64,000 nt of DNA from Tubulanus polymorphus (GCF_964204645.1 NC_134032.1:3558175-3622174), one strand, 5' to 3'. Positions 2,384 through 50,643 are shown, numbered from the stretch's first letter. Numbers and translations are program-made. Notes: generated by a model not told the origin, from the letters alone.

Positions 2384-2512
2384 GAGCCATTTTATTTCGA
2401 AGTCTCAACTCGCGCCATTTTATTTCGAAGTCTCATCTCGCGCCATTTTATATAAAGTCTCATCTCGCGCCATTTTATTTTGAAGTCTTATCTCGCGCCA
2501 TTTTAGAAGTCT
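2384..2512. repeat. Tandem repeat, 28-bp unit (cgcgccattttatttcgaagtctcatct), ~4.5 copies
   Basis: Directly visible. Confidence 0.85.
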
Positions 2513-15381: not shown

Positions 15382-15416
15382 TTTTTGGTCCCTCGAGCCC
15401 TCGAGCCTGGCAGTAC

Positions 15417-18400: not shown

Positions 18401-20774
18401 AAGATCTATGATCCATTAGGGTTTTTCACCCCAGTAACTGTTAAAATAAAGGTCTTTGTTCAGAGTCTTTGGAAGGATTCTTACGACTGGGACGATCCCC
18501 TGCCAGACGTTTTGTGTTCTCGGTGGAGAGAAATAGCTGGTGACCTAAGCAATCTTCCAGAAATCTCGTTACCTCGATGTTACTTTGCCGGTCGTGATCA
18601 AAATGCACAGCTAGAATTACATACGTTTGCTGATGCCAGTAAATCTGCGTATGGGGCTGTTTCATATTTGAAGTGTGGTGATGAATGTATCTTGATTTCT
18701 TCTAAATCACGGGTAGCTCCTAACAAAGAAACTACTATTCCAAGGTTAGAATTAATTGCAGCATTGATAGCGTCAAGGTTGACTGATTATATTTGTACCG
18801 CTTTAAAGGCAAATGCTCCAAATATCGATGTATATATGTACACAGACAGCCAGATCGTGTTATCATGGCTTAAGTCTAAAAAGAAATTAAGTGAATTCAT
18901 TAGGAATAGAGTGTATGGAATAAGATCTTTGGTTGAGAGTACACGCTGGTATTATTGTAGGTCTGATGAAAATCCTGCTGATTTGCTCACTCGAGGTGTT
19001 GATTGTTCTAAACTACGTGAGTTGTATCAATTCTGGTTCCATGGTCCAGACTGGCTTATTAGTAATATTAGGCCGGAGTACCTTTCGATGGCCATTGATG
19101 ATTCTGAAATCCATGTTATGTCCACTGATTCTGATGCCGATGTTTTCGATGCACCGTTACCGTTTGTTGATTAAAATTGTTTTTCTTCTATTGTTAGTTT
19201 GTTACGACTGTCTTCACTGGTGTTTCGATTCATCAACAACTGCAGAGCCGGAGTTACCCCGAGGCTTCACGGTAGAATTACAGCGGAAGAAATGCATTCC
19301 GCAGAATATTGGTGGATAAAATTCATTCAAGATTCTGAGTTTCCAAAGGTACGCGAACCATTGACGAAGGTTCAGGGTAACAAAGGTTCTTGCTTGGCCA
19401 TTGTCAATCAATTACAATTATATATAGGTAACGATAATTTGATAAGATGTAGAGGGAGATTGCAAAATGCTCCTATCATCGATTCTGCTAAGACTCCAAT
19501 ATTACTCCCAAAATATCATTACCTTACTCGTTTGATAGTGTACAGAGAGCATTGTTACAACTTCCATTCTGGAGTTAATTCTACTATCGCACAACTCAGA
19601 GAGGTCTATTGGATTCCGCAGATTCGACAACTTGTAAAGAATATACTTGAAAATGTGTTGTATGTCGCAAATTATCATGTAAACCTTACAGGCTCCCAGA
19701 TCCTCAACCCTTGCCTATATCTCGAATCACAGAAGTACCATGCTTTCATTTTACAGGCGTGGATTATCTGGGGCCTTTGTTCGTAAGATCGAAAAGTGGA
19801 GATTATGTGAAAACACACATTTGTTTGTTTACATGCGCGGTGAGCCGTGCAGTTCATTTGGAGCTTGTGTCAGATCTTACTACAGAACAATTCATATTAG
19901 CATTTAAGAGATTTGTGTCACGTAGGTCCGTACCTAGACAGCTCATTTCTGATAATGCATCTACGTTCACTTGTGCTAATGATATTCTGATCCGCATTTT
20001 TTCTGCAGTAGAATTTTCGACATATTCATCCCAACAAGGGATTATTTGGAAATTCATTCCAAAACGTGCGCCGTGGCACGGCGGATTTTATGAACGATTA
20101 GTATCTTTGGTGAAATCATCAATTTATAAGGTGCTAGGTAGAACCTCCGTGACATTTGATGAGTTGCATACTTTAGTTACGCAGATTGAAAGTCGATTAA
20201 ATCAATTACGTATATATCTGATGATGTACGCGACCCGGAACCTCTGACTCCGTCCATGCTCCTTTGTGGACACCGTCTTACTTCTGTTCCGGTTGCAGAT
20301 TTTGATAATACTGATCCAGACTTTCGTGTTGATAATGAGAAATTTGTGAAAAGATATAATTATTTGGATTCATTGATTACACAATTTTGGAATAGATGGA
20401 AGGGTGAATATGTGTTAAGTTTACGTGAGTTTCACCGTACTACGGGCCATAATTGTTGTGATATGAAGGTCGGTTCAGTAGTTCAAATTCACGATAGCGG
20501 TCCTCGTTTAAGGTGGCGTCTAGGTGTAGTTACTGAATTACATCGAGGAAACGATGGCCACGTGAGATCCGCATCTCTTAAAACATCAACCGGATTTACG
20601 AATAGAGCTATAAGTTGTTTGTATCCGTTAGAGGTTTGCGCTAAGGAACCCGTAATAAGTTCTTCAGTGAGTGATGCTCCAGTATCAACACGTCCGAAGA
20701 GAGCAGCGGCAGTTGCAGCAGAAGCAAAAATTCGTCAACTTTCGCGCCGGGCGGAGGAGTCGGATGATGATTAA
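15417..20774 (+). pseudogene. BEL/Pao gag-pol polyprotein, disrupted
   Basis: Gag LPTFTGNLLEW and zinc knuckles, protease LFDDGAQRTF, RT DIEKAF/YMDN, RNaseH FADAS..PRLEL..TDSQ..NPAD, integrase GVDYLGP/SDNA/GGFYERLV. Lesions: frameshift ~15945, in-frame TAA 19172-19174, frameshifts ~19650 and ~20200. Confidence 0.9.
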
Positions 20775-20927
20775 TTGCGCTCTTGAAATATTTATAATAC
20801 TTGCTGTTAAAATCGAATTTAATTATTGTATGTATATCTGTATTTTTTATTTGAGGTAAACTAGAATGGTGTAAGAAAATGAAATTGTAATATCAAATTT
20901 GAGATTTATATTTTGCGGCGGGAGAAA

Positions 20928-21141
20928 TGTTGAATATTGTAAGCAAGCTTATCTGTATATCCTGTTGTTACGGTTTATGGTCGAGTTAGTTCACGGTTTA
21001 TTACTCACATTATTTGTACCTTATATAAATACAGTATTGGGAATAAATTCTATGTCATTTTTGTATCTGCGATATACGTGTGTGTGTTGTTGGTCTTTGG
21101 TGCGCCCGTTTAAGGGCCCGACTGTCGCAGAGTTTTCTACA
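20928..21141 (+). repeat. 3' LTR (214 bp)
   Basis: Preceded by the PPT and followed by the TSD atgag. Confidence 0.95.
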
Positions 21142-22361
21142 ATGAGATTGAGATCGTTGAGGACTATCTATACCTGGGAGTTAAGTTCAATTGGAATGGC
21201 AGCTTCGCCAAAGCAAAAAAATAACTATATGACAAGGCAATGAGAGCAATGTTCTCGGTAATACAAAAAGGCAGACGCTTGAAGCTCCCGATAGATGTTA
21301 TGCTGAAACTATTCGATATGTGCGTCGCACCCGTTGCGTTATATGGTTGTGAGATATGGGGCTTTGAAAGCCTCGATTTATTAGAGAGTCTGCACTGTAC
21401 GTTTTGCAAAATTATTATGAAAGTGTCAAAATATTCGCACAACCTGCAGGTATTAGCTGAACTTGGGCGGTACCCCATGAGTATCGAGGTAAAACGGAGG
21501 ATGGTAAACTTTTGGCTTAAAACTGTTACCGGCAAAGAATCAAAACTTAATGCAATCCTGTACCGTATATCCCTCAATCTGTATGTACGCGAAAAACACA
21601 AGTCCCCTTGGTTATTGTATATAAAGAAAATATTTGACGACATTGGCTTATCTTACATATGGTTACAGCAATACATGGAAAATTATAAAACGCTCTCCAA
21701 GTACGTGAAACAAGTCCTCCGTGACCAACACGTACAAGAAATGCTTCAAAAAGTGAATGACGATCAGCAGTATGTTAATTTCAAACTATATAAGAACGAT
21801 GTTAGGCTTGAAAAATATATAACTCAACTTGATGGAAGTCTTGTGCATAGCTTATTCGAATTCAGAATTGGTTCCTATTTATTACCGGTAAATAATCGAT
21901 CGAACGCTCATATAGACCGAAGTGAAAGACTGTGCCCTGCCTGTAACACCGTAGGAGATGAGCTTCACTTCATTTATGACTGCACTTTGCTAAGTGATCT
22001 GCGTGATAATTCCATCCATTTAAGTATGTCCAGAAACTTGGAAATATTAAGGAATCCTACCCCACAATTAGCTAGATTTATCCAGTTAGGTTTAAGTTTA
22101 TACAGATCCCTCCAGTGAATTGTGTATATACGTGTGATATATCTTGCTGTATATAATTCAATCTCTGTACTTGCTTAGTTTGTAAATAGTTTTATTACTG
22201 AAAGTTTGATATTAAATTTTGTTAATTCCTATTTTGTTTTGTATATATGTATATAATTCTGTTCATGTTTTGTAAATTTTTATATTCCATATTTTGTATT
22301 CAATCTTGCCTCCACGTACCATCTTATGGTTGGAGTGAAATAAATATCTTATCTTATCTTA
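21142..22361 (+). mobile_element. RTE-X-like LINE, 3' part, with 3' UTR and (ATCTT)n tail
   Basis: Removing the BEL element and one TSD gives KFMFGTDE|IEIVEDYLYLG. Further motifs LYGCEIWG, ELGRYP and C-terminal RLCPAC..DELHFIYDC. One TAA at 21222. Ends aaataaatatcttatcttatctta. Confidence 0.85.
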
Positions 22362-28817: not shown

Positions 28818-30639
28818 AAATGGCGAGACAAATTATTGCGATTTATATCAGAACTATATCATTATATTTGCGATGGTCGCGCGTCAAACTATACGCATAA
28901 GCAGGTATATATCTTTTTTCACTTGACAAATTCTTGAAAAACATTGAAAAAAAAATTTAGTATATAAGTTACGACCTATGATCTGTCTGATAGAAAAAAG
29001 GTATCTCTTATTAGCCGTAAATTAGTCAGTCATTCATTTATCCTTCACATTGTGCGTATAGTTCACATACCACCCGCGGTGGCTCTATTTATGATGTTAT
29101 CTTTGACGATCAACACAAGCACATGCGCGCGCTAGTTCGCGTAGCCTATGTGCGTAGCCTATGAAATAAACATCGTTTGTCACTGACCGACAGCACCACT
29201 CACTAATATACGTTTATCGTGTCATATATAAGAGTAGCAACAATATCAGGAGTTCGAAAACGATGTAATGCCCCTATGAAATGCCTAGTGAAATGACTGG
29301 AAGCCGTTAGCGTTTGGCAGAGATGACGTCAGAACGCGCACCTACTAAACAAAAGCAATGACAGTGACCACGTGCTGAAAAATTGCCGATTTAAAAGTCT
29401 AATTTTTCGGTAATAGCTTGACTAAAACTCAAAAGTCGCATATTTGATATATTTTACATTTGAAAATAACTTTTCCACAATATTCTATTTTGATGGCAGT
29501 TGATTTTAAACCCGTTAAACATGTTTATGGATTGGAATACGAATTTTGGAAATGGTAACCCAACCAAAAATGTGTAGGTCCGAACCTACATTAGGTGCTC
29601 GCCCTCTTTGAGTCCAGGTATCATATTATTTACAATACAGATGGTAATTAGCTGAATTTATAGTATTAACTGAATTTATAGTATTAACTGATATTCCGTA
29701 GAATGAGCGTATATGCAATACGTATACAGCGTTTTGTGCACAAAATTGATTTGCAATTCAATTGTTTACTGAAATCTATCGTTCTACATACTTTCAATGT
29801 GATTGAACTGTGAGATCTAATAAAAACCATGTCACTATAACAATTTATATCTAATCTGGACCGAATTCCACGTTCTTGAAATATATATGTAACTGCATAT
29901 TGAAACAGATCTCTATAGAATATAATCAAGAGTTGTGTAACCAGGAGAACTTTTCAATCATATCAGCTTATTTACTTACAAGAACAACCGTGCAAACATA
30001 AAACACAGGTTCAAATCTCAAACAATGAGAACAAATCTGCTTCAAAATCACGAGGAAATCAAATAAACAGAAAACCCGTGATCCTATTCATTTTCAATTT
30101 CTAGTTTTTTATACAGCGCGATCTGAATCTAGCTACATTTAAAACCTCGATATTATTTTGGGTTTATTGAATTAAACATTTTTAAAACTTCATTTTTCAA
30201 AAGTCGACCTATAAAATGTGGCCATCTGAAAATAAACATCACCGCCTTTGAAAGAAATGCCTTGTTCAGGGGGGTCCACCTCCGATTCGTGACTTTGGAA
30301 TATAACGTGATTGAGCGTCATTTTGGGCTGTGCTCTCGCTTATCTTACTTTTGGAACAATTTCGTTTGAGGTAAGTGTGTTACTAGAACGCGTGTTGAAG
30401 ATAACTTTTTTAAACAAAAACTTTTTGATGTTACTTCAATCGCGTGGACCGAAACAACAGCCGACGTGGTTATATCAATATATCACGTGACAGACGCGTG
30501 GTTGAATATTGGTCCGTGAAAATTCAATTTTACCACATTTCAGTGTCTTAGTAGAAGACACGGAGCAGTAGTGTCCGTACATTTTTCACACAGTTTTGTC
30601 ATATCAAGAGGTATGTTGTTTAGATATTTTCAATGTCGA

Positions 30640-31160
30640 GAGCTGTGAACTGTCCAATAGTGGGTGAACTGCCCGATAACGGCTGACGGCTTGCGGGCTG
30701 TTTGACAGCTATCAGCTGTCTGACAGCTAGTGGACTGTCTGATAGTTAGTCAACTGTCTGGTAGCTAGTAAAATGTTTGACAGCTGTCTGGCAGCCAGGG
30801 AGTTGTCTGATAATTAGGGAACTGTCCGATAGCTAGTGAGCTCTTTGATAGCTAACATGTACTGTATGATATCGCGCGAACTGTGTGATAGCTAGCGAGC
30901 TGTATGGTAGCTAATAGGCTGTCAGACAGCTGGTGGCCTGTCTGACAGCTAGTGAACTGTCTGACGGGTTGTGTCCTGTCTGATAGCTAGCGAGCTGTAT
31001 GGCAGCTAATGGGCTGTCAGATAGCTGGTGACCTGTCTGACAGCTAGTGAACTGTCTGACGGGTTGTGTCCTGTCTGATAGCTAGTGAGCTGTTCGACAG
31101 CTGTTAGCTGTCCGATAACTAGTGTGCTGTCTCATTGCTAGTCAACTGTCTGACAACTAG
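30640..31160. repeat. Degenerate ~20-bp minisatellite (ctgtctgacagctag-type) with a 95-bp higher-order duplication
   Basis: Repeated ctgtc/gatagctag motifs; the block at 30887 recurs at 30982. Confidence 0.8.
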
Positions 31161-31224
31161 TAGCTAGATACTAGATGTTGAGTAGATATTAACTCAGGTT
31201 TTGATTCGAATTCTGTAACGCCGA

Positions 31225-31495
31225 CAGAAGCGACCGATAGAGAAGTTCTATCAGTAAACCTGATAGAAGCGACCGGTAGAGGGTTTGTAATCTGTATACC
31301 TGATAGAAGCGGCCGGTAGAGAATTTGTAATCTGTAAACCTGATAGAAGCTGTCGGTAGAGAGTTTGTAATCTGCAAACCTGATTGAAGCGGTCGGTAGA
31401 GAGTTTGTATTCTGTAAACCGAATAGAAGCGGCCGGTAGACAGTTTGCAATCTGCAAACCTGATATAGAAGAGGCCGGTAGAGAGTTTGCAATCC
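31225..31495. repeat. ~40-bp minisatellite, ~7 copies (copy 1 of a duplicated intron-exon unit)
   Basis: Unit tctgtaaacctgatagaagcggtcggtagagagtttgtaa. Confidence 0.9.
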
Positions 31496-31729
31496 GGAAT
31501 TTCTATTCCTAAACCGCAAAACGTTCAATCGAAATCTGCCTCACGTGTGAATAATACACACGAATTGTTTCAGTATTTAATGATCAGCAACATGGGAAAC
31601 TTGAGTCTGAATATGAGTAGAGGTTAATTGTGAAAATACTGGACAAAACAATTGATAGGTCAGTAGAATGTCTGCACTGTTAGAGATAGAATGACGTAAT
31701 TCTAAATTCAGTTTTTCAGTGCAAGTACG

Positions 31730-31850
31730 ATGGCGGAGAGAAATCCAGAAATAAATGTAGACAATTCCAAAATAAGGATAGACGGTGAAAATAATAAGAC
31801 GACAATATCGTCAAGTTTCGAAGGCATCAGCAGACCTGCTGAGAATCTAG
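31730..31850 (+). CDS. Exon encoding a degenerate RHIM-like repeat (MAERNPEINVDNSKIRIDGENNKTTI..)
   Basis: Acceptor ttttcag|31720, ATG at 31730, donor ag|gtaatt at 31851. Paralogous to the exon at 37684-37875. Confidence 0.55.
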
Positions 31851-31864
31851 GTAATTATAGATTT

Positions 31865-34800
31865 ATGAATGAATGAATTTATTTGCAAAATAAATTGTTA
31901 CAAAAAATATCGACACAATATACATTATATTCAGAGTAACAATATATAGTGCGAGGAGTAAGGAGAAGTCAAAAGTTGACTTATACGAGTCCTTACCCCT
32001 CGGTCAACAATCACACTCGCAAACACTCATCACTTACACACACACGCACATTCGTTACAAGGATCACCCTTTACATATCTAAACAGATAAAATGGCGGCC
32101 ATGTTGCGGGCATCAGTATTTTGCGACCAAGTAATTGGTAAAGCATTTCTTAAAGTTAGGGCGTGATATCGAAGATTTGAGTTTTCTGGGAAGGGAGTTC
32201 CAGGATCTTGTACCTTGAATTTTTAATGATTTCATTCTAAAGTTAGATTTCGCATATTCCATTTTAAATTTAGTGGGCGACGAGAAGGTCGCCCTGTCAT
32301 GGAGTTTTGAAAACAGTAAAATTCATTGAAAATTGATGGTAAGTTTTGATTAATTTGACTAAAGAGAAAATTGCACAACTGAAATTGGTATATGTCGTAT
32401 AGCTTTAAGATTTCTAATTTCTTGAAAATTGGAGATGTATGCGCTAGCCAAAAAGAATGTGTTATTATCCGAATTGCTTTCTTTTGGAGACGAAATAAGG
32501 GTTCCAAGTAAATATTACATGAATAACCCCAGATTAAAGTTGCATATGCAAGATGTGGATTGACAAAACAATAATATAAATTTTTAAGAACACCAAAAGG
32601 AAGAACATGTTTAAGCCTATTAATGATTCCAATTCCCCGGGAAACCTTTCGAGAGATGTATTGAATATGGTCCCGCCATGTCAGTCTCTGGTCAAAAATT
32701 ACACCTAAAAATTTTATACTATCTACACGCGAAACTCTTTGTCCATCGAAGAAAAGATTAATTTGACCTAGACACTTATAACCAAAGACAATAAAATGAG
32801 TTTTAATAGTGTTCACAGAGAGCCTATTTGCTCGAAACCACTGAATAAGTTTCTTCAGCTGAGAATCTAAAACTTGCTCTAGTTTCTTGGGGTCCTTATC
32901 GCTGATGAAAAAATTACTATCATCAGCGAAAAGAATTGACTCTAGGAGTTTACAAGAAGAGGGGCAATCATTGATGTATAATAGAAAAAGCAGAGGACCT
33001 AGGATTGAGCCTCGAGGAACTCCGAAAGTTATATTTCTAGTTGGAGATAAGGAGTTATTATATTTAACACATTGTTTACGGTCTTCTAGGTAATTTCGAA
33101 ATTATTGTAGAGGTGGTTCACGAATTCCATAATTTTCCAATTTTGAAATTAAAATATTTTGATTGATTGTGTCAAAAGCCTTTGACAAATCAACGAAGAC
33201 ACCAATTGTGACTTTGCCATTTTCAAGATAATCAGTTATCTTATCAATGATAAATGCTAAGGCTGAGGCAGTGGATCTATTTTTCCTGAAACCAAATTGA
33301 CGATCTGATAAAATATTGAAATTTTCAAGGAATGCCTGGAGTCTATTATATACGAGTTTCTCTATTATCTTAGATATAGCGGGAAGGACAGAAATAGGTC
33401 GATAGTTAGTGAACTGTGATTTATCGCCACTTTTAAAAATAGGTGTTACGTGAGCGATCTTAAATATGCTAGGAACAATACCCGTAAGAAAGCTATTATT
33501 TAAAAATATGACAAAGGGGTTGTGAAATAACTTGAATTATTGATTTCAATAGTTTAGTGCTGATTTGATTACAACCACTGGATAGTTTATTTTTAAAGCC
33601 ATGCACAATCAATTCAATTTCATTGGCTGTCGTCGGTGACAGAAAAAAGTTTATATGATTTCGTTCCTCTAAATAATCTTTAAAATGTTTATCGGAGGGC
33701 GGTATTTTTGATTCTAAGGAGTCGGCAATATTAACAAAATAGTCGTTAAAACCACTGGCTATATCATAATCTGTTGAAATTACTTTGTCTTTATGTACAA
33801 ATTGAGAATGGGGTTTCTGTTTATTGAGTAAGTTATTAACCTGTTTCCACGTTTCTTTAGTATCTGATTTACAGGAAGCGAATACATTCTGATAATACAC
33901 TTGCCTACATTTCTTTAAAATCGAATTGAGCTTATTTCGATAAGTACAATATTTATCCTTACATTCCTGGGATTTTTTACGTAAATATTCTTTATACAGT
34001 TTTTCTTTCTGTTTGATAGAACGTCGAATACCACAGGTTAACCACGGTTTACTATTTTTCTCCACGCCAGGAGTTACATACTTAAAAGGGAAACAGATTT
34101 CAAAATAATTATCAACAATGTTATAGTACTCCTTACATGAGACTTCTGGGTCATTGCTATTGTACATCTTTTGCCAGTCGCATGATAATAAACAGCGCGT
34201 GAAGCGTTCCGTGGTCCGAGGATTAATATCTCGGATTTTGATCCGCGGTGGTTTAGTATCATGAGACTCGTACAAACCGTGAACAAAAGTATAAATAGGA
34301 TAATGGTCAGTTATTTCCGCCAAAAATACACCGCTAGTAAAACTGTAATTATCAAAAAAGTTTACTAAAATATTGTCAATTACGGTTGACGAGTGGTCAG
34401 TGACACGAGTAGGGATATTAATTAATGGCATAAATGAATTAGAAATAGCCTCATCCATAAAAAAAGCGTCACACTGACCATTCGCACCGTAATTTCCAAA
34501 ATCAATGTTATAGTCACCCAAAATTAAGACATCTAATTTCTCTCTATTAACGCGTTCAGTAAATGACTGAAATTCTTTGATGAAATTAGCTATATCACTA
34601 TCAGGAGCACGATGAATAACTCCGACGATAATGCTTATCGGTTTAAGAGGGACTTCTATAAACAAAGATTCTGCCACCTCCTTTATCGTATCTACTGCGG
34701 AATAAACTTGAATAATTCGGCAAATGATAATGAATCGTTTTGACAATTGTCATCAGTCCATGTTTCTGACAGACTGACAATTGAAAAATTATAATTCAAA

Positions 34801-36800
34801 GTTTGGAGATAATCGGAAAATGAATCAAAATTTTTATTTGCACTTCGCATGAAAAAAACTGAGAGGTGAATCTTTGCCATCATGATTTAGTAAATTCACA
34901 TCAAATCATAGGAGCATTTGTATTCACAGTTAAGTATAACGCCATCCATTTTCACAAAAGTGTGAATGAATATAAAGAACACAAATATCTAAGTCACGTA
35001 TTATTTCATTTGGATGTTTGCGCATTGAAATTTCAATGAATAAAGACCCAAATGTAGTAGACATATATAATACTACGCTATAGTTTTTAAATTGTGTACA
35101 GGTTTTAGTTAAACCTATAATTGAAGACTGACTTCCATAGACATTGAGACAATCATAATTATTTTTTATATTTCTCACAGTGTGAGAAAGAAAAGAGAAA
35201 TTCACCACGTCGAGGAGCAAAACGATCGAAATGACATAAACACAAGTATTGACTATGTCCGGTATATTCAAGTCACTCATCCTACTCTACGTTTACGTTT
35301 GGTTTTTTTTAACGTTTTTTCAGCCGAAGGAGGCGTTGATGTTAAAGATCGCTCTTTGCGTTTGAGTTTATTTCCAGAACCTGGAGTTTGAAAAACATCA
35401 AGATCATGATCGTGATCTCCAGTGCCGTCAATCGCTTCGCAAAAGTTTTTAATCAGCGCCAGTTTTCCAGTCTCGTTCAGATGAACACCACTTTTATCTG
35501 GTGGCGAGTAAAAACGCTCCTGCGCCTTTTGCCGAAGCAAGGTGAAATTGTTAATGAAACAAATGTTTCGTTTTGTGCATAGTTTTTCCATATAACTGTT
35601 AACCCCCTTTGCAGCGTTATTGAATGCCTTTACAGCTGTTGTCGCCTCCCTTTTTGGTATTATACTGGATAAATAAACATTTGGGTAATGTTCTGTAGTC
35701 TTAGCTAGAGCTAAAGACAAATTCATTTTAACTGTGTCAGTGTCATTCTTGTTGTTATTTACATCGTTGCAACCCAAGTGTAAAATAACGTCACTAATTG
35801 ACGCCGTATCCGGAACCGCGGAATCAGCTTTAGTCAGTAGTGACGATATTTTATCGCTGGTTGCGCCTGGTTGGTAAATAACAACACCTGTTGGGATATC
35901 ACATTCCCGAAGGTTTGAGTCCCCGATTACGACAATTTTGGTTGTAGGTGCCTCTCTTCGGGCTTCTTCGCATCATTGGTTTCGGCTTTTCCAGGTTCAA
36001 TATCACGCTGCATGACTAGCGGACAATCACACCTTATATGATCCGCTGATTTACATTCATGGCACAATCGGTTATTAAAACGGTTTGGACAGTCAAACGA
36101 TTTATGATCACTGTTCATGCCCATAGACATACAACGCCGGCAGTAACTATCACAGAACAAGCGCACTGAAAAATCCCCAATTTTCGTGTAGTTGGGCATC
36201 ACGGTTTTAATATTATTTAACTGCAAATATCTAGTTCCAGTGAATATAGAAGTTCCTTTGATGACACCCTTTTTATAGAACCGCTAACATAGTCTCCGAA
36301 CTGAGATATTCAAGTTACGATTGTTCTATCATCCATTTCGATAGGAGCGTCTACGACTTTAATATTAATCACATTCACATCAACGTCCGTAAATCTAACG
36401 TTAGTTTTCAGCACCTGGAAGGTCTCGTCGGACAGTGTAGATTTCGTATCATTATCTGTAGCAGTCACTATACAATAAGAGTTAGTAAGTTGAACTGAAA
36501 GAATCTTACTCACATCGACATTCGACTTGAGACCATCTACAACATCCAAATGAGACAATTTTCCTTTACCAAACTGTCTCAAATCAACCAGTGTTCAGTT
36601 GTACAGGTGTGACTTGAGTCCAAATGTGATCTGAAATAATTAACTAGGCAATAAAAAGGAACGTCGTCTCTGTAGATTCTGAAGTAAAGAATGGACCCCC
36701 TCACCGGATTGTTTTTAATTCTTGAATGAATATTAAACGACTAATGGTCCAGTGGCCCACCAAACTGTGCTAGGTAAAAATCTGCTACGCTGTCTCAACA
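31865..36800 (-). mobile_element. Near full-length L2/Crack-like LINE, degraded: ORF1 (RRM-like + CCHC + SGNH esterase) and ORF2 (APE endonuclease + RT)
   Basis: ORF2 motifs LSETW, ILGDYNID, PTRVT..IDNI, TDHYP, PRGSILGPLLF, LFADD, HTSPIFKKL. ORF1 motifs CHECKSADHIRCDC, IGDSN, LHLGCND, DKSGVHL. 3' tail aataaa(ttca)n at ~31865-31880. The 5' end is approximate. Confidence 0.85.
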
Positions 36801-37179
36801 ATTCATAGAAGAAAAATGTTTGTTTGTTTATGTGAATTTTAGATGCAACAAATGTTCGCAATTTTTATTGAACCCGAGAGAGAGTGACATGAAATAACTA
36901 AAACTACCAGGATACGTGCGTACAGTCTTTACATCGATTTGTTATTTAATATGTAAGCTTGAGTCACATTGTTTTTAAGACTGTAATCTCAGCGGACTAT
37001 TGTGTTCACTTATCGTCCGTCTTCCATGGACGGAATCCTCGATGGATATGATATTTGGTTTGTACAATATAAGTGCATCTTCCCGGGATGAATCGAAGGA
37101 ACATCCCTCTATTTGTATTATTTGTGTTTTGAGCTAGTTTAGGTTTACGGAATTATTGATTAGTTTTTAGGTTTTCATA

Positions 37180-37465
37180 TCTGTAAACCTGATAGAAGCG
37201 GCAGGCAGAGAGAGTTTGTTATCTGTAAACCTGATAGAAGAGGTCAGTAGAGAGTTTTTAATCTGTAAACCTGATAGAAGCGGTAGGTAGAAAGTTTGTT
37301 ATGTGTAAACCAGATAGAAGCAGTCGGTAGAGAGTTTGCAATCTGTAAACCCTATAGAAGCGGTCGGTAGAGAGTTTGCAATCTGTAAACCTGATAGAAT
37401 CGGTCGGTAGATAGTTTGCAATCTGTGAACCTGATACAAGCGGTCGGTAGATAATTTGTTATCCG
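37180..37465. repeat. ~40-bp minisatellite, ~7 copies (copy 2 of the duplicated unit)
   Basis: Same unit as 31225-31495 and followed by the same flanking intron sequence. Confidence 0.9.
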
Positions 37466-37683
37466 AAACTTCTATTCCTAAACCGCAATCCATTCAACCG
37501 AAATCTGCCCAATAGGTAAATGATAAACCACACGAATTGTTTCAACATGGAAAACCTGAGTGATTATGAATAGAGGCTAATTGTGAAAATACTCTGGACA
37601 TAACTGGTCAGGGCAATACCTTACTATAAGATGATTAAGACTTATTGCGATGAAATGACTGCATTCTAAATTCGGCTTTTCAG

Positions 37684-37875
37684 TACATGGGACCATGGCA
37701 CAGAGAAATCCAGAAATAAATGTAGAACATTCTGAAAATGTTCAAATCGGTGACAATGTGGCGGAGAGAAATCCACGGATAAATGTAGACCATTCTGAAA
37801 TGAGTGTAGGCGGTTCCTATAATGAGACGAACATATCTTCAACTTTCGGAGGCGTCGGCACCTCTGAGAACTCAG
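37684..37875 (+). CDS. Exon encoding a RHIM-like motif (INVEHSENVQIGDN) plus a second degenerate repeat
   Basis: Acceptor ttttcag|37684, ATG at 37695, donor cag|gtagaa at 37876. VQIG core in an N/S-rich context matches the RHIM consensus (I/V)Q(I/V)G. Confidence 0.6.
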
Positions 37876-38061
37876 GTAGAATTATAGATTGTAACCACCA
37901 GGGCTATCAGGGGTTGATTGTATTTGGACTCTTTTGTAATTCTTATTGTGAGCATGGTCGCAAATCTGGCCCATCGACTGTTGCTACCTTGTTGTAAATT
38001 GACGAGAGACTAGGTAGGGTCTAACCATCGGTTTTCGGGCCCTAAAAGCGGGTGCTTGGAT

Positions 38062-38093
38062 CATGGACGTATAAACTAGTTTATACGTCCATG
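38062..38093. mobile_element. Perfect 32-bp palindrome, same mini-element family as 1898-1931
   Basis: catggacgtataaactagtttatacgtccatg; flanks cttggat/ctgagat match at 5 of 7 positions (possible decayed TSD). Confidence 0.7.
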
Positions 38094-39270
38094 CTGAGAT
38101 CAACTTTCAGATCTTGAAAACAACTAATACCTATAAACATTGGTCTGAGTAAAATATTCGAGAGAAACATCCTAGTTGATTCAATCAAATCATATCACAA
38201 GTAATTTAAAATCGTGAATGGGGATGAATCTAGGAGCTATAGGTTGCGAGCCTTGTGGCAAAGGACAATAGCACTTTATTGAAAAGGTACTTCCAAAGGG
38301 TTGATATTTTACTACATTTAATTAACTAAGACAATCTCCAATGAACTGCAAAACCATTGAACTGCAAAAAGTTTTGATCCCCAGAAATAATTTCTTGACA
38401 GATTCTTAGGAGAAAAACAACTCGTCTGTATCTTTCATTGGCGATGAGTAGCACATTTTGAAAAGTATAAAAGAGCCTTTGTTACAAATTCATTTTCATA
38501 ACGGAATTCTATGAAGAGCAGCCATTTACAGTGCTCGTGAACCTTCTTCAACGTTTAGGCTAATTTGTAGTTACTTTTTCCATTTTTCAAATGAACCGAT
38601 ACCTATCCCCGCCTTTTTTCAAATTGCTCCAACTTTCCAGTTGCATTAGCATTAATTCGGTATCATATTTCACTGATATCCCTGAAATTCCACCCGTTAC
38701 TGGAATGCTCAGCAGATGAAAAGTGAAAAGGGAAATTCAGAATATGAGGGTCTTGTTCAGGATATCCCTTGGGACAAAAGTTGTTTTTCCGTCCAAAGTT
38801 GAATTCAATTACAATTACAATTGGTTAATCTAGTCCAGAATTATGCAATTGCACAAAGCAGAAAATTATTTTACAACATACCTCGCAGCATTCAATTAAC
38901 ATTAAATTTGAATTTAAAAAATTGTGCAACTTATTGGGGAATCTCCAATAGCGTTCCGGGATGTATCTAGCTCTGAATTCCGGGAAGGACGGGCAGACGG
39001 GTAAAACGTGATATTCATTCCCTACCGCCTCTAAATCACACTTTTGGCACAGCCTATCGACACGGGCGATTCCCGCCTCTACCAGAATTCCACCGGTAGC
39101 CTTTGATTGAGCATCTAAATCTACATAAAGTGGGTGCTAAAATCAAGCTGTTTTCAGCGATGCCTCAACAAATATTTTTTTATTGTACAACCTTTCTTTT
39201 AAACAATAGGAAAAACTGTGACCGAATCAGCCATCATAGAAAACATCCGAAACTGATTTCATTATTTCAG

Positions 39271-42200
39271 ATGTCACTCAAGTTAAGAAACGTATAAACA
39301 AAATGATCGACGTTGAAAATGACTAACAAAAAGGTTTGGTGGAGCGACGAATTACTCGATTTCAACAACTTATTCACCGATGAACACTCGGAAATTCGAC
39401 CCCAAAACGAAACCCGTTGATAAATGAAGAAAGCGAGGAGCAAAGAGTGATTTTAACCGGTAATTTCAAGAAGCTTTTCACATATGACTAGCGTGCTATA
39501 AAGCGTATTATGACAATGATTTTTATAAATGTTTTATATCTTTTTGGACATTTTTGCAACTCGCTACAAAAAAGACGTCCAGAAATTCTAACAGAATATT
39601 GTGTTTTGATGGTCCTCTAATCCAGCAATGCGAAATTCCTGTTTCTTGTTGGATATGAGCGTATATCTATATTCCTCTGGTAATGCTGGATAAAATAATT
39701 TGGCAATTGTAAGTTATTAAATTTGAACATGAATAGTAGGAATTTCGTAATATGTTTCAATTTTAGGATATTCAATTTCTTGAAAATAGGATCAGTGTGT
39801 TCTAGAAAGAAGGACATATGTTTATTATCATTAAATAATAAGTTATATATAATAATAAGTTCGAAACTTATGAAGTGGAGGAAACACTGCAGTAACCTAC
39901 GATATTATCAAGTGAGGGAGAAAACAGACCATTTTGTCAAATAGTTCGTGGGTTAGAATATTTTCACTGAAATATTTGAAGAGTCGTATTGATTGTACCG
40001 GTACATCTAGTAAAATTTTGGTTTTCTTAATCTATATTCATTTTTCACCATGGTTGTAGGAATGTTTGCAATAGGTTAAACTGGCCGAGGAAGGATAATA
40101 TGCAATTTACAATGTTTTTATAATGTTTCAATATTTTATCCTAGTTTATTTCTCTGTTTTCGTGTAACATGATGAGATCATTAAAGCAGGACTCTGTGCT
40201 CCACTGGCTAAGAATTGTATTGTAAATTGATGACTGCTTCTCACATAAAATTTCAATAAACGCTATATATCTTAATAGAAATAAACCTGTTTCTCTTCGA
40301 TAGATGGGAGCCTTCAACTTGACCTTATATTTATTGGCCATATCAAATATCCTATTATATTTTATACGTGTCGAGTTAAGAATAAATGCTTCCACCTAGA
40401 ACTGTTTTCAACAGATTCCACTTTTTTCTTCATGTCATTTCCAGCAGCAAGGATTTTAAAATTTTAAAAATTTGAAATTAAGAAAAAAAAGTCTTGTCAC
40501 TATAGAGGCGCTGGATTTAACGAGATAACACAAATACAGTTTATATCTACTCTGTACCGAATTCCACATACTTGAAATATTCATGTGACTGTATAGTCAA
40601 ACAGTATTAACTCTATAAGGTGTTTATGCTTTCATTTGTTTTCCTAAACCAAAATCTCAACTGGAACTGGGAAGTGAGGACGTCGATGGATAAAGCAATA
40701 TACAGGGAGAAACCGGCGATAACAACGAAAAACAAGAGGTTCACGGACCTTGAGACTTCATCGAGATAATCGGAAGTTCCAGTTTAGGAAAAGGAACAGG
40801 TCCCGCCTTGCTGTGCAGGCTGGATCAATGTATCTAAACGTATCAATTACATTACAGCATGTCACCACTTGTGCTGAAATGTAATTTATAATTCAATACT
40901 GTCTTAATTGTAAAAGTTATGCTTGTTTTCTGGGCTTATTTTCTCAAAGATCCGCATGAATTTTCGTAGTACTGATATCCGCGAACAAAAAAAAAATATT
41001 ATTATAGAATGTTTAAAAGGAACTGCTTTTTCATAATAGTATGAATAAGCTTATTTCACAAACAAGGTGACGAAACAAAGTGGAAAATATGTTACAATAA
41101 TAATCAGCGGGAATACAATAGGGTTTATGCGAAGGCAGCAGACACCCTAATAAAGAATGATAAGAACGCTTTACTAGATAACGACTGTCAGACACCCCTA
41201 CTATATAACAAATACTCTTCAATTAGAATTCCCTATGAATAAGCTCATTTCAACTCATTTCCAGGAAAACGTTATGACATAATCTAGGATATGTCAAAAA
41301 TGATAAATATCCATTGACATACATTTCCCAGCGCTCTAATCAATGTATCATGTATACTTCCGCGTAATGGAAAAAGTACTGAGCTACGTATCTATCAATG
41401 ACACTTCCTTCAGCAAGATCAGGAACTATCTTCGAAAACTCTGTGACAGTGAACATCATTAGAATTATATACGTAGATATTGACTTGGTACTTAAACCGA
41501 ATTTTTCTGTAACTCAACCGTTATTTGCTTCAACTGATAGAACAGGAATTCCAATTGGAATCGATAGTGCCAAATAACTCACACAAGTCTTTCTTCGCGC
41601 ATTGGCATCGCATAAGAACAAAACCAAGGCATCGCCATCCGGTATCAGCCCAATTGCTCATTTGGCCAAAAAGGATAACATTTCAGTTCCGGATGATTTA
41701 CCAATAGCATCAGTCTAAATAAATGCTACGTATTTATGATTATTGCGTACTCTATACTGTCTTATTCATCATCGAGATCTTAAATCATTACTCAGTGATT
41801 TGATGAAAACTCTTCTGTAGAGGTTGATAAGTATAATATCTCAATCTATGCTTTCAACGTTCGTAGTTGTAACGTGAATTTTGAACCATTTTCATATCTT
41901 TTGAACAATTTGAAAGCAGACTTTTCTATTTTGAGGCTTTCAAAAACCTGGACAAACGAACTGCATGATAATCAGAGGTTTTACAGATTCCAAGGCATGA
42001 AAAGCGTTATAAGTTTTTAAGAAAATTTTAAGATTTTAAAAAATTGTCAGGGGGTAGGATTTTTAGATACATTTTTTACGTAAAATTTAGACCAAATCAT
42101 TTGGGAACGTGTTCTATATGAAGACAAAAATATTTTTAAATGCCTCTTTATATATAAATATATCGATTTTGAAAAAGAAAGAAATAGTTAATTGGTTTGA

Positions 42201-42601
42201 TCTACCAACCACCAACACAAAACAAAGCAGCGATGGCTTAAACAATTAATCATTTCATTCCACTTTTAGAGAAACTCAATACAGAAAACGAAGTAGGCAT
42301 TCTAATGGGCTATTTCAGTTAGTAGAGTATCATATCATAAAAAGATGGATATATATGGGAAATGATAAGGATGCACAGGGAAATGATCTACTGAACATTA
42401 TAACAAGGGCAACGTATTAGGTGGGCCTACGTTAGAAGCAATGTGTACGTATTTAGAATATGGAAGATATTCATTTGAAAATAGCGCAGCTGAAATTGTT
42501 GAAGTATTTAAATCGATGAAAATGGATTCAAATTCCGTTCATTTGTTTGAACTGAACAGACTGTCTAATTTACGTTGTAATATTCGGTTACTACTGCTGT
42601 G
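39271..42601 (+). pseudogene. Decayed downstream exons of the RHIM-repeat gene: linker exon (39271-39459), SGNH-like region (~40650-41641), death-fold-like region (~41900-42600)
   Basis: Splice-site-bounded segments with coding-like translation but multiple stops and frameshifts. Motifs IEIIGSS, KYVTIIISGN, FPSALINVSCILPR, DRTGIP and GGPTLEAMCTYLE..AAEIVEVF. Confidence 0.45.
39617..39817 (-). mobile_element. L2/Crack-like LINE 3' fragment
   Basis: HTDPIFKKLNILKL..YPTRN resembles the ORF2 C-terminus of the LINE at 32.2-32.5 kb. Confidence 0.6.
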
Positions 42602-45060
42602 AAAACACTTGTCTCGCTAGTCCACGTATATAATAGCACCCAGCGGAAATAGAATCACAACTGAATTCAGTTAGTTCCACGAAATACGTGAGTTAAACGA
42701 TTTGTTATCATTCTAAAGTGGCAGTTCCTAGTTTTGTGCTCTGACGTCTCCCTTTTAAACCCTATAATTTAAAACACCTTTTCCAGGTTTTAATACATTG
42801 TCAACGATGATCAGTAAGTCAAATATCATAAATCAATTCATTCTAAACATATATTCATTCGAATGTTTTCTAATTCATTAAGTAGCGACTCAATACGTTT
42901 CATACAGATAAGACTAGGTTTACGGTTTATTAATGAACATGTATTTCTAGGTGAGTTATTAAAGCTTATTCTTCCACTTTGTGGGATTTTTGCGTCAGTG
43001 TGCGCCATGGCTGCAGGCGAAGGAGAACGAAAATTGACGACCAGAGGATTCGTGTTCGACTGCTTTGTTGATCAAAGTACTGAGTGTTCATATCTTCTTT
43101 GAAATAATGATGTATGATCATGTAAAAGATTCTGCAGTTGTAGAGACTGACTAGGGCTGTATATTTCAGTTCATACAACGGTAGTTTATTTCTCTCTCTT
43201 TATATTGCATGTCAGCCAAGTACACAGAAAATTGGACCTATTTATTGAGGCACTGTGACTGAGATTAGTCACGGGATTTTAACCGCTACGTGTACTCAAA
43301 ACTCAATACCGAACGAATAAACCTGCTTACAATGCTTAGAATGCATACAAAAAGAATACAAAACGTAACCACGTACTCCCGCCCCAAAATTTCGTGAATA
43401 TAATTATCCCCTATATAATATTAATATTTCAATATCATTTACATTTATATCTGACATATATTTTCACTAAGTGAAATTAACGTTGGTAAAGAACCTGATT
43501 GATAACTAATGAATGCAAATTACGAGAGTCTCGTGTTCAGAAAACAGAATTCACATACACATTTTGTCGTTTCGCTCGGCGGTTACGAACAGCCGTGATT
43601 CTTTGATCAGCAGCAACGGCAGATGCGCGGATTGGACGTTTTCCAACCACAGATCCGTCTACGTTTTCGGTAGGATTCGCCTCGCCTAGCGATCCCGGAT
43701 CTGCGCATGTTGTACCATTGGTGAATCCAATGGATGTCCTCAAAGTAGCGTTTCGAACTTTCCAGTCTTTTTCACGACGCAACGCGGTGTCGTCCCCTAG
43801 ACGCCATAGGTTTCTGGGTCGTCATGAATTTGAAAGACGGAGCCTAAATTAACATTTTCCTGATCTCTCCGTTTCCTGATCTTTCCTGATGCCGTTCGCG
43901 TAAGCTCAACAAATATTCACATTTTGCAGCGACGACAAAATTAACTGAACAATAACCAAATATAATTCATACGACGAGTAATCAAATCTCGATGGACACG
44001 GAATTCAGGATCACTAAATTCCGTCTCGCACACGTAGGCTTGAGGAAACCCTGCAATACGGCGTCCATACTTGAGCATGGACGGCGTGAGCGGCTGAATG
44101 TCGGACGCATTGAAGATTGATGTCAAAGGCCTATCATTCAGTTGACTTTCAATTTCTATTAATAGTACAATGTAACTAAATTCAAATGTGAGTTTCGATC
44201 GACATAAAATCTTTTTGATCATGCCTTTAACCAAGCCCACTAGCCGCTCATAAAAACCCCTTGCCAGGAACTACGTTTGGCTATAAACTCCGGTTGAACT
44301 CGATCTATTTTCAGCCAAATAACTAGCAACCTTATTCGACGAAATTATCTCATTCAAGACTTCATTGGCCGATGTAAAAGTAGATGCATTGTCGGATATG
44401 CATTTTCTAGGAACTGACCGATACTACTCGACTGCTAGGCAAATGCAGATGTACGTAGTGGAAGAAAGCATGGTTTACCCTAAATACACTGGCATTTAAA
44501 ACTTTAATAGCAATTTAACGCGCTGTCTGAGATCAGGAATCCAATAAGAGACCATTCAATTAGTACGTACACGCTGAGGGGAGTGGGTGAGTAGTTAACG
44601 TAGAATGCGTATTTGTGTATGGTGGAGGGAGTAGGATTTTAGGTACATTTTTGTTCCGTTTATTTCTGACATCCGACAATAGTGGTTCCGGGACTCAAGG
44701 TCACTAGTCTCGCCGCGTAGTTTGATAGATCTCAACACGTGGCGCACGGAAAACTGAAGATGTCGCAACATAAACTCGAAATCACCAAATCCACAAATGT
44801 GTGATACTTTGGCAACGAAATAGGATAGGTCTCTTTGCCAAATCAGAAATGTCAGCATCGTCGATTCTGCCGTTTGAATGTATTATTCCATCGTCACCGA
44901 TACATAACTGTAAGTTTTCAATCAATCTATTAGTAACTGGAGCTCAATTATGTAAGAAAACTATTATACCAATATCCGAGTAAAAGATCGAAAGTATTGT
45001 ATTTGATGATGCTGTGATAATATATGGATTGGGGAGTAAAAAAAATCCAGTTCAAAATTC
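42600..45060 (-). mobile_element. Degenerate BEL/Pao element: integrase relic, PPT and probable 3' LTR (~42600-43373)
   Basis: IESQLNDRPLT..LTPSML, ISDNASTF, LQL.IGDDGII..GRI and C-terminal RPIRASAVAA motifs. PPT ggggcgggagta on the minus strand at ~43374-43385. The far LTR boundary is uncertain. Confidence 0.7.
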
Positions 45061-45089: not shown

Positions 45090-46280
45090 CTACCTATCGG
45101 TATTGTAGTAGAACAGTTTTATAAATTGTCTTCTAAAAATTTGTAACGTACCGAAATATATGAAAAAGTTTACGCAGAACAAGACGTTTCGAAATCCGTA
45201 AAATATTCCTTCTAATTCACGCCACAAAAGTATTAGGTAAAACGTTCTAGTAGGGGATCCGTAAAGATTAATACGATGGTTTATCCAGATCACATACATG
45301 AGAAATTCGTTGAAGTTATGCATTAATTTAGTGACAGTGTTGGGTAGAACACAAATTATATAGACTAAAATGACAACTAGAAGTGTTTTACTAGTCGATG
45401 ACCGAAAGCGTTCTGCTCCTGTTCTATTCAACATGCTAGATTTCTGAGAACGTGATAAACCAGTTAGAATTGATGCTATGATGATCGCAATGGCCGGAAA
45501 TATCTCCTGAAAGAATACTCTTGCCATTGTTATAATAACATAAAGAAATTGATTCATCCCATAAGACTGCTTGCAACTGAATTGAGTGAAGGTTTCGTTA
45601 TATCTACGAACCGCATTGCGATAAATGTAGATACTTTTACTCAAAGAATCGAGGTTTATGATGCAGGAAAACACTATGACACCACATACTATGACGACAC
45701 GCCGCTTGTAGGTGAAATATCTCATATGAAAGAATGGTAAACGTATAGAAACAAATCTTTCAACAGCAATTGCTAAGACTATGTAGTGTGATACTGCTAT
45801 TGCTTGGTTGTAAGATATGTTAACCAACAAACATTTTGGAATTAATTTGTTAGGAATGTACTGAAAATAATAATAGAAATGGTACAATGATGATGAACAC
45901 AGTTTGCCATGTTTTGACAATGTCATATAGTTATCTCCACATATTTTCGGGTAAAATTGGATTTTTACCAGGATGTATTTCAAATAATATGGAAAGTTGC
46001 TCAGCTTGATAAATAAAACGATTTGTTCTGAAAACGCGAGAGTTATGAGATAGGGGAACGTGTAACGAACAGTCTGGTATCTGCGACATTTAATCAGTAG
46101 AATTATTGTCAGAAAGTTGAACACACTTCCGAGTGGAAACACTAACAAAGTAAATGTGTAGAAGTTGAGAAGATAAGCGCGTCTAGTGAAACTTCTAAAG
46201 GCTGTAATAAAAGCTGGTGTCCTGGAAGCGTATGACAGTCGCTGGGTTGTAGTAACGGCGATGATAGTAACATTATTCAT
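45090..46280 (-). CDS. Intronless class A GPCR, FMRFamide/peptide-receptor-like orphan, 396 aa
   Basis: Seven hydrophobic segments: TM1 G..FN, TM2 YL..LAFSE, TM3 IAVERF..I..PF, TM5 FP, TM6 CVLP, TM7 NFFIY. N-glycosylation site at the N-terminus. Confidence 0.85.
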   Translation of the reverse strand: MNNVTIIAVTTTQRLSYASRTPAFITAFRSFTRRAYLLNFYTFTLLVFPLGSVFNFLTIILLIKCRRYQTVRYTFPYLITLAFSEQIVLFIKLSNFPYYLKYILVKIQFYPKICGDNYMTLSKHGKLCSSSLYHFYYYFQYIPNKLIPKCLLVNISYNQAIAVSHYIVLAIAVERFVSIRLPFFHMRYFTYKRRVVIVCGVIVFSCIINLDSLSKSIYIYRNAVRRYNETFTQFSCKQSYGMNQFLYVIITMARVFFQEIFPAIAIIIASILTGLSRSQKSSMLNRTGAERFRSSTSKTLLVVILVYIICVLPNTVTKLMHNFNEFLMYVIWINHRINLYGSPTRTFYLILLWRELEGIFYGFRNVLFCVNFFIYFGTLQIFRRQFIKLFYYNTDR

Positions 46281-49246: not shown

Positions 49247-49322
49247 TCTGAAATGAAAATAAAATCAATTTTTCAAATTAAGAAGCTTTCATAACTAACA
49301 TGTGTATTACGTTTATTTACAG

Positions 49323-50643
49323 ATGGGGAAATATGACAATTGCTGTTTTTGTGAAAACGCAAGAAATTATCCGTTCTCAGAGATAAAAAAACCTCATGTA
49401 GATGGAAAATTGATATATTACGACATTGTTCGACGCAATGATCCAACATTTGTGAATCACTGTAAAACCGCACTAGAAAAAATGGGTAAGCAGCTAACAG
49501 TGACGTCGAAGGTCTGCTCAAATCATTTCATCGATGGGAGGCCGACCGATATCAACCCTTATCCATACGTTACAAACGAGGAACAAAATATGCCAAAGAA
49601 GCGAAAAAATAGAGATTGTTCACGTTCGGTGATTAGTAAGACGACGACAACGCAGCCGATATATACGGGTGTTGCGGTAGACGGTTCAGGTGATGGGAAC
49701 ACGATGAGCCTGACATCGTGCGTCGCATTTGACGCAGATGACGCGGGATGTTGACGTAAAGTTTTTTACCGGTTTCGATAATCGGGCAACTTTGAAAACT
49801 ATTTTTAATTTCTTGTCTGAAAAAGCTGCCTGTATGGTTTATTGGAAAGGTGGTCAAACAAGAGAAACTCTGTCGAACAATAAGATGGGTAGAAGGAGAA
49901 AACTAATCCTCGAAGATGAATATTTCATGGTTTTGATGCGTTTACGTCTGGGGTTATTGGTTCGTGATTTATCGCACCGCTTCAACGTATCAATTTCTGC
50001 CGTTAGCTCGATATTTTCAACGTGGATACGTCTAATGAGGCTTGAATTATCATGTATCATTATCTGGCCTTCAAAGAATCAAACCAAAGCTCTTCTACCA
50101 GCTGCATTTGTTCAGTTTTATCCGCATACAAGGTGTATCGTGGACCGCACTGAAATTTCTATTGAAACGCCAACAGCGCTCGACCTACAAGCAGCTACTT
50201 GGAGCGACTACAAACATTCTAATACGATACAGTTTTTGATTGCCATTACTCCAAATGGATTGATATCGTACGTTTCGCCTTGCTACGGAGGTCGTGCTAG
50301 TGATAAATATATATTCACTGATTGCGGTATTCTCGACTTCATTGAACCACACAACGAAATAATGGCCGACCGAGGTTTCAAAGTTCAGGAAATTTTAATG
50401 TCAAGACACGCAACGTTAGCAATCCCCCCGAGCGTTTATCATAATGCACAGATGACCAACGATTCAGTGAAAACTACATCCCGAATTGCAAACGTCCGGA
50501 TATATGTTGAGCAAGCTATAGGGCGGATGAAGAATTTCAGAATTTTAAAGAATACGCTGGAGGTCAAAACCGTTCCTTTAATGGATGATGTAGTTATTGT
50601 TTGCGCGGCAATATCAAATCTCAAGCGCGCACTTTGCTCTTAA
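49323..50643 (+). mobile_element. ISL2EU/Harbinger-type transposase: THAP + HTH + DDE_Tnp_4, with a frame break near 49730
   Basis: THAP KVCSNHFIDG; HTH MRLRLGLLVRDLSHRFNVSISAVSSIF; catalytic VDRTE, MADRGF, RIYVEQAIGR. Confidence 0.88.

Follow-up and report, generated by a model that had tools for sequence, protein, structure and literature searches.

Whether RHIM repeats, an SGNH-like domain and a death fold belong to one and the same gene is the question raised by a locus of the palaeonemertean Tubulanus polymorphus (Nemertea), where an earlier note had read these three modules one after the other on a single strand. The window, i.e. the whole 64-kb stretch of DNA that was analysed (G000:C8:3558175-3622174), is transposon-rich, with a G+C content of 34-42%, and the 268-Mb assembly that contains it was searched as well. 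An adaptor combining RHIM, SGNH and death domains would have added a new architecture to those known in immunity. Our analysis points to another answer. The locus is very probably the RefSeq gene LOC141909698, the 5' part of a NOD-like receptor (NLR) gene with RHIM cassettes and a NACHT domain, which has lost everything from the P-loop onward and whose transcript continues to be made and spliced, the mRNA encoding a protein of 122 (or 119) amino acids (aa); the "SGNH" and "death" segments further downstream are a dead fragment of a long interspersed nuclear element (LINE) outside the gene. The proposed adaptor is an artefact of a gene relic lying beside LINE debris, a false lead that is now removed.

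Transcript and Encoded Protein

Four public read runs were compared with positions 36700-42650 of the window. Runs X2 and X3 covered all bins of this interval, as expected of genomic DNA, and run X4, which we read as RNA, covered 16 of the 30 bins. Nothing from X5, presumed to be RNA, matched there, a result that does not prove absence. X4 yielded a 1200-nt contig with more than 99% identity to the window, in which 37875 is spliced to 39271 (a GT..AG intron) and the exon named here exon A stands immediately 5' of exon B. It can be attributed to this locus, since the paralogs on the same contig of the assembly (C8) are only 85-97% identical to the window in this region. No retrocopy was found in the assembly, where exon B has only three close genomic matches, every one of them with introns. 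The spliced contig also showed a high word depth. At its loose end, CATATCAAGAG is directly followed by TTTTTCAGTGCAAGTACGA, which corresponds to a junction between 30610 and 31712.

The exons, all on the plus strand, can be described as follows. The first 5' untranslated exon (30277-30370, start approximate) ends at a consensus donor (GAG|gtaagt, GT from 30371), and the second (30544-30610) is bounded by AG and GT and joined to 31712 in X4; both the donor and the second exon had been correctly proposed. The 181 loose letters of the X4 contig, made up of 19 nt, 67 nt and about 95 nt, fit an exon ending at 30370, a fit that is arithmetic only, the junction not being displayed. Exon A had been placed at 31720-31850; its end is borne out, whereas the acceptor in use lies 8 nt upstream, so that the exon spans 31712-31850. 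It carries an ATG at 31730, 40 codons and a phase-1 G, and represents a RHIM cassette whose core (IRIDG) is degenerate, as indicated by the sequence, the X4 contig, residues 1-40 of the database protein XP_074656374 and the alignment with sister cassettes. Exon B (37684-37875, phase 1-1), correctly delimited in the earlier note as was the acceptor at 39271, is supported by X4 junctions and encodes half a RHIM unit, its core (NVQIGDN) intact, then a full unit whose core (MSVGG) is degenerate. Exons A and B both finish in a phase-1 G followed by gtaattataga.

The terminal exon (exon C, 39271-40280, 3' end approximate) is coding up to a TAA at 39324-39326, the remainder being 3' untranslated region (UTR). 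The donor once assumed at 39459 is unused, the X4 contig being colinear with the window over 39267-39977. A second contig covers 39979-40137, depth drops past 40281, and AATAAA signals occur at about 40255 and 40281. We place the end of the transcript, approximately, at 40140-40280. XP_074656374 (isoform X1 of LOC141909698, 122 aa) consists of exon A, exon B and 18 residues of exon C; the TAA that ends it stands where decay had been predicted to begin, downstream of 39324. Isoform X2 (119 aa) uses an acceptor at 39210 instead, its coding part (39210-39256, plus strand) being in a frame that matches the tail of the isoform X2 protein. All three C8 copies of the gene are called protein-coding by RefSeq. 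It should be noted that exons were searched singly, and that the sole full-length product used was XP_074656374.

Downstream LINE Remnants

Two further exons, at 40650-41641 and 41900-42600, had been proposed to complete the gene with SGNH-like blocks and a death-domain-like C-terminus. They are not exons, as X4 depth is zero across 41078-42650 and the frames are broken. SGNH-like residues are indeed present, but at 41288-41715 (plus strand) only, and as a decayed tail of a LINE first open reading frame (ORF1) rather than as part of a gene. This stretch corresponds to the C-terminal 144 aa of ORF1, i.e. the second half of the SGNH esterase and its tail, spread over three frames with stops. It matches residues 360-503 of the ORF1 of an intact LINE copy, L035, with 66-69% identity (tblastn, E 5e-42), and this match is colinear with a second one downstream, at 41793-42319 (plus strand), where a decayed N-terminal part (aa 20-182) of the APE endonuclease of ORF2 of the same LINE was recognised (tblastn, 51-52% identity, E 1e-35). 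L035 has a 503-aa ORF1 with two zf-CCHC domains (35 bits) and Lipase_GDSL_2 (39.3 bits), and its ORF2 begins with an Exo_endo_phos endonuclease (32.7 bits). The own-genome DNA search showed 41281-42317 to be repeated elsewhere, six contigs carrying at least 12 dispersed copies of it at 74% identity. A dispersed multi-copy element with zf-CCHC and SGNH in ORF1, then APE in ORF2, is what defines a LINE with an esterase ORF1, and the element seen here fits this definition. A LINE family different from that of the window's own minus-strand LINE is needed for 41288-42319, because the ORF1 of the latter gave no tblastn match between 40 and 43 kb.

As judged from these alignments, the "SGNH blocks" are what is left of the C-terminal end of a LINE esterase, and the "death fold" consists of the start of the endonuclease of the same element and of sequence with no domain signal. 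The latter comprises 42320-42601, where Pfam is blank for the ORF at 42441-42599 and X4 depth is zero; no death-domain signal was found with Pfam. The presumed SGNH exon also contains a short dispersed repeat (40728-40959), present in more than 25 copies at 79-89% identity in the own-genome DNA search. A domesticated host SGNH/GDSL hydrolase was considered and ruled out: instead of a complete domain in an open frame spliced to host exons, the window has no more than ORF1 residues 360-503, which are interrupted by stops, spread over three frames and at zero X4 depth. Partial copies of window 41582-43000 were also observed at C8:2.43 and 2.61 Mb.

We therefore give almost no credence to a single IMD/RIPK1-like adaptor gene in which a domesticated transposable-element domain, the SGNH module, would stand together with RHIM repeats and a death fold. 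The segments do share their orientation within 12 kb, and the SGNH-like residues are real; but the transcript ends well before the zero-depth region, the SGNH piece is followed by the endonuclease of the very LINE from which it derives, and no death domain accompanies it. No transcript and no paralog links the modules, and what lies here is, in the words in which the earlier note had itself described its refutation, "unrelated fragments lying side by side".

RHIM Identity of the Cassettes

A RHIM is recognised by its core tetrad, [IV]-Q-[IVLC]-G with N-rich flanks, and by Pfam profile PF12721 with a gathering cut-off of 20 bits. The core tetrad is present in exon B (NVQIGDN); it has degenerated in exon A (IRIDG) and in the second exon B unit (MSVGG). 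The gene comprises three RHIM-derived units, two of them diverged and the third a half-unit in which the VQIG core is intact. When the whole genome was scanned in six frames with PF12721, five matches exceeded the cut-off, three of which are sister cassettes located 5' of NACHT genes on contigs C6 and C56. These cassettes read ..SKMVQIGDNNTMN.. and score 22.1-22.3 bits (C6) and 20.9-21.9 bits (C56). With hmmscan, one C6 cassette (L045) reached 22.1 bits and the C56 cassette (L048) 20.9 bits, the translation of the second C6 cassette (L046) being identical to that of L045. The sister cassettes align over their full length with the window exons. Since these homologous cassettes pass the curated cut-off, the cassette family can be assigned to RHIM by curated criterion and by descent, and the units of the window are taken as diverged members of it. 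The N-terminal repeats of the earlier note thus hold as RHIM-type cassettes, although the units of the window itself, at 13-15 bits, stay under the Pfam cut-off.

It could be argued that the units are neither amyloid nor RHIM, and that they form a lineage-specific repeat, an ordinary beta-solenoid with another role and an incidental likeness to RHIM. In favour of such an explanation, the AlphaFold2 (AF2) model of the ten-unit array found on contig C9 is a regular solenoid with two strands per 21 residues (predicted local distance difference test score, pLDDT, 79.5; predicted template modelling score, pTM, 0.75), which is suggestive only; with Foldseek, no PDB entry matched it at E <= 0.001, generic solenoids being all that was returned. 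A 30-column profile of 14 units, compared with all PDB chains, retrieved no RIPK1, RIPK3 or HET-s, only chance rows at E ~1. Pfam RHIM touches one of the 14 units, and gave mostly no match on the N-termini of the NACHT-family members. In a search of 1.84 billion representatives, the cassette profile retrieved only T. polymorphus proteins, and this form of the motif seems to be lineage-specific in present data. Against it, the sister cassettes make up three of the five matches of the genome that pass the curated cut-off, the cassettes occupy the death-fold position of NLRs, as in the RHIM-NACHT proteins of amphioxus, and the 122-aa protein is disordered in its stored ESM Atlas model (pLDDT 0.36), whose look-alikes, scoring 0.75-0.76, are uninformative. 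Moreover, AF2 applied to near-perfect repeats from a single sequence tends toward solenoids. The AF2 and ESM models carry no evidential weight for amyloid. On balance we regard the solenoid explanation as distinctly unlikely, and retain the assignment of the cassettes to RHIM.

Other RHIM-scoring frames were observed in the genome. L044 (G000:C3:26754333-26757389) contains a 434-aa open frame (ORF 1087-2388, minus strand) with a RHIM above the Pfam cut-off (21.7-26.2 bits). Its N-terminal part resembles TIR adaptors by language-model features (0.91, TICAM2-like), and Pfam finds no TIR in it; if the model-based resemblance holds, this would be a TRIF-like layout of TIR and RHIM in a nemertean. 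L047 (G000:C8:4550888-4553932) and L049 (G000:C7:3976244-3979297) are RHIM-scoring open frames outside the cassette family, at 22.2 and 17.9 bits in the six-frame scan.

Intact NACHT Relatives and the NYN Gene

Paralogs of the gene had been expected elsewhere in an intact state. They do exist, but as genes joining RHIM to NACHT, none of them joining RHIM to an SGNH domain or a death fold. The genome search with exon B returned two near-identical copies on C8 and intact relatives on C9, in which an exon with 2-10 RHIM-like units precedes an exon of 900-969 aa with a NACHT domain. At C9:3.605 Mb, one exon is made of 9.9 tandem 63-nt units (consensus MAESNPGINAENAEIVQIGDK) and the next one is a 969-aa open frame; C9:3.48 Mb shows a two-unit version of the same layout. 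The large exon contains NACHT (58 bits) with weak NLRC4_HD2 and weak LRR_14 signals, NACHT scores ranging from 56 to 58 bits among paralogs. Intact paralogs, located on C9, C6, C56, C32 and at the start of C8, associate RHIM cassettes and NACHT with a C-terminal part in which an LRR signal is weak. This NACHT family includes 13 named proteins of T. polymorphus; most start with 1-7 units over cassette exons ending in ..RPAENL, and others start with an immunoglobulin (Ig) domain and a transmembrane segment or with a coiled coil. Genome-wide counts amount to about 18 NACHT copies that are intact, about 6 that are broken, and 57 matches to the cassette. The immune character ascribed to the locus is thus kept in the form of an NLR-derived RHIM gene, and not in that of an adaptor with SGNH between RHIM and death domain.

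The cassette exon was also found ahead of a different domain. XP_074658355 ("MARF1-like"; G000:C9:4828010-4849954) has two cassettes, then an NYN RNase domain (64 bits) and RRM_MARF1. Its exons have canonical, phase-compatible (phase-1) splice sites, and the junction between cassettes and NYN is predicted from the sequence and the RefSeq annotation. This protein is a candidate RHIM-linked effector, a putative RNase. The same cassette exon consequently heads NLR sensors, an NYN RNase gene and three RHIM-only genes. What remains of interest after removal of the adaptor is therefore a spiralian NLR family with a RHIM cassette as its sole N-terminal signalling module, the shuffling of the same exon onto an NYN RNase, and truncated, expressed RHIM-only derivatives in three copies.

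Some minor observations concern these loci. Two NACHT-family proteins, P0008 and P0011 (23-Mb contig), have a signal peptide, Ig-like ectodomains and a transmembrane helix in place of RHIM cassettes, and are apparently membrane-anchored NLRs. A Polinton-like insertion sits within an 18.7-kb intron of the XP_074658355 gene. C9:4.83 Mb, taken as an orphan cassette locus, was rejected as such, being the NYN gene itself, and a cassette triplet at C1:19.74 Mb has no evident downstream domain.

Truncation and Triplication

The linker that had been noted after the RHIM exons is indeed a linker, namely the pre-NACHT linker of the NLR, from 39271 onward. Its frameshifted remnant at 39328-39520 (plus strand) corresponds to about residues 8-68 of the NACHT exon and stops just before the P-loop (the C9 NACHT exons match it in two frames by tblastn, at 50-69% identity); the genome search also matches it at 39357-39512, with stops. 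No NACHT with a Walker A P-loop was found anywhere in the 64-kb window, only this broken pre-NACHT linker of about 68 aa. Just 3' of the truncation point, inside the 3' UTR, lies a C-terminal fragment of a LINE reverse transcriptase (RT; 39552-39832, minus strand), with 46% identity in tblastn to the RT end of the window's own LINE and common to the paralogs.

Positions 25869-49036 of the window are one copy of a segmental triplication on C8 (more than 20 kb, 85-99% identity), the other copies being C8:3800001-3820160 and C8:2379001-2394400. A 1-nt insertion and an in-line TAA in exon C are common to all three copies, which indicates that the truncation is older than the duplication. There are therefore three such RHIM-only genes, whose truncation and early stop predate the triplication, as read from their shared lesions. 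A 13-nt deletion in exon C, specific to the window, restores the frame for a few codons, and each copy meets a different stop.

The long intron between exons A and B contains a nearly intact LINE of about 4.7 kb (31863-36585, minus strand), with a Zn-knuckle and SGNH in ORF1 and APE and RT in ORF2, as recognised from its ORFs and from Pfam Lipase_GDSL_2 and Exo_endo_phos_2. It sits 13 nt past the exon A donor, and the host intron is still spliced. The corresponding site is empty in parA and parB, the two paralogous segments; the insertion is recent, since it is absent from both.

Possible Role of the RHIM-Only Product

Since the duplication, exons A and B have accumulated no indel event over 313 nt, compared with 20 over 1690 intronic nt (P = 0.025), and substitutions amount to 3.8% in exons and 6.8% in introns (P = 0.057). 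This suggests constraint on exons A and B.

From a mechanistic point of view, the product of the window gene would be a RHIM with neither effector nor NTPase domain. It could co-assemble with the RHIM cassettes of the approximately 18 intact NLRs, with those of the RHIM-NYN RNase and with other RHIM proteins of the genome, and would in this way compete with, or buffer, assembly driven by RHIM. By analogy with Pirk, we tentatively propose that the product modulates RHIM assembly as a domain-less competitor, with a likelihood that we place just short of even.

Several points weigh against this proposal or against the gene model beneath it. Run X4 carries no record as RNA, and was taken as such because it is spliced and patchy in its coverage. 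On Pfam RHIM, exon B stays at 13.2-14.8 bits, under the cut-off of 20, exon A gives no match, and two of the three RHIM cores of the window are degenerate. The C-terminal tails vary among copies and isoforms. When exons A and B were compared by eye with parA, about 8 non-synonymous and 4 synonymous changes were counted, i.e. a ratio of non-synonymous to synonymous rates (dN/dS) of about 0.7, which comes from very few sites and is compatible with neutrality, and the survival of three copies could be owed to passive segmental duplication. Finally, binding and amyloid formation by the window product are putative.

With the same anatomy, the product could also be inert, the gene being an expressed NLR pseudogene relic copied passively three times in a large segmental duplication. 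This is the main alternative, and quite a possible one, though we would not call it probable. The shared insertion and TAA, after which each C8 copy ends within 20 codons of its entry into exon C, would be expected of such a relic, as would the degenerate cores and the excess of non-synonymous over synonymous changes in the parA alignment; the duplicated block, of more than 20 kb, is mostly non-coding, and about 6 other copies in the NLR family are broken. On the other side, the exons are without indels and have fewer substitutions than the introns, the spliced contig has a high word depth, RefSeq calls all three copies protein-coding, and nonsense-mediated decay would not be expected, because the stop lies in the last exon.

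Relation to Known Systems

The competitor proposal takes its model from Drosophila Pirk/Rudra, a RHIM-like negative regulator of the IMD pathway that binds RHIM-bearing receptors and damps signalling. The likeness lies in a small protein with RHIM-like units and with no catalytic or death-fold domain. There is, however, no sequence relationship, the window gene coming from the truncation of an NLR, and its regulatory role is putative. With IMD and RIPK1 themselves, the likeness is limited to the RHIM-type motif, as the window gene has neither death domain nor kinase and the partners of RHIM in T. polymorphus are NACHT, NYN or nothing.

Closer counterparts of the intact relatives are known. RHIM-NACHT proteins were described in amphioxus in 2014, and tandem RHIMs, two or three of them, occur in some proteins of invertebrates (Kajava et al., PMC4262963). 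The RHIM-NACHT-repeat proteins of Branchiostoma floridae (e.g. BF82280) likewise have RHIM N-terminal to NACHT, in the usual position of the death fold. In T. polymorphus, by contrast, each cassette forms a phase-1 exon of its own, the half-units of 21 aa being arrayed up to ten at a time, and the window copy has lost NACHT altogether.

A short N-terminal NLR motif that is repeated on a separate effector protein is also found in fungal NWD2/HET-S and in the bacterial NLR-associated amyloid motifs (BASS); the repeats of HET-s are also 21 residues long (PMC4518210). Unlike in those systems, the candidate effector of T. polymorphus is an NYN RNase and not a pore-former, and any templating or genomic adjacency of sensor and effector, which share an exon, would be putative. 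A wider picture could nonetheless be drawn, in which the RHIM cassette is a mobile phase-1 exon wiring a nemertean-specific network: about 18 RHIM-NACHT sensors would template the RHIM-NYN RNase effector, and possibly a TIR-like RHIM adaptor, with the NLR-derived RHIM-only proteins as decoys or buffers. A scheme of this kind, which would parallel in an animal the NLR-amyloid-effector pairs of fungi and bacteria and would have an RNase in the role of executioner, is in our opinion rather unlikely as a whole. If the cassettes do template each other, they would offer a system to study the wiring and restraint of amyloid-type signalling in animals beyond vertebrates and insects.

As for the LINE debris, the order of domains in 41288-42319, in L035 and in the insertion at 31863-36585 is that of CR1/L2-type LINEs with an SGNH/GDSL esterase ORF1 (Zn-knuckle and SGNH in ORF1, APE and RT in ORF2). 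No difference from these was seen, 41288-42319 being a broken member; the likeness is one of domain order.

Repeats and Neighbouring Genes

Each of the two cassette exons is preceded by a tandem array of 7.1 copies of a 40-bp repeat, detected with TRF at 31212-31494 (5' of exon A), as part of a duplicated cassette unit, and at 37171-37458 (5' of exon B). The same array also precedes cassettes at the C9 loci. More generally, this 40-bp minisatellite (about 7 copies) accompanies each RHIM cassette exon, including those of L028 and of the NYN gene locus on C9 (L041), and its word depth is very high in X3 and X4. It is a common repeat, and it may mark the unit of exon duplication.

The neighbours of the gene in the window include a single-exon LGR-type receptor with four LDLa domains, LRR and 7tm_1 (4996-8202, minus strand) and a rhodopsin-family G-protein-coupled receptor (45093-46280, minus strand). 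Also among them are a BEL/Pao long terminal repeat retrotransposon (14107-22118, plus strand) and a THAP and DDE_Tnp_4 (Harbinger-type) transposase (49302-50643, plus strand).

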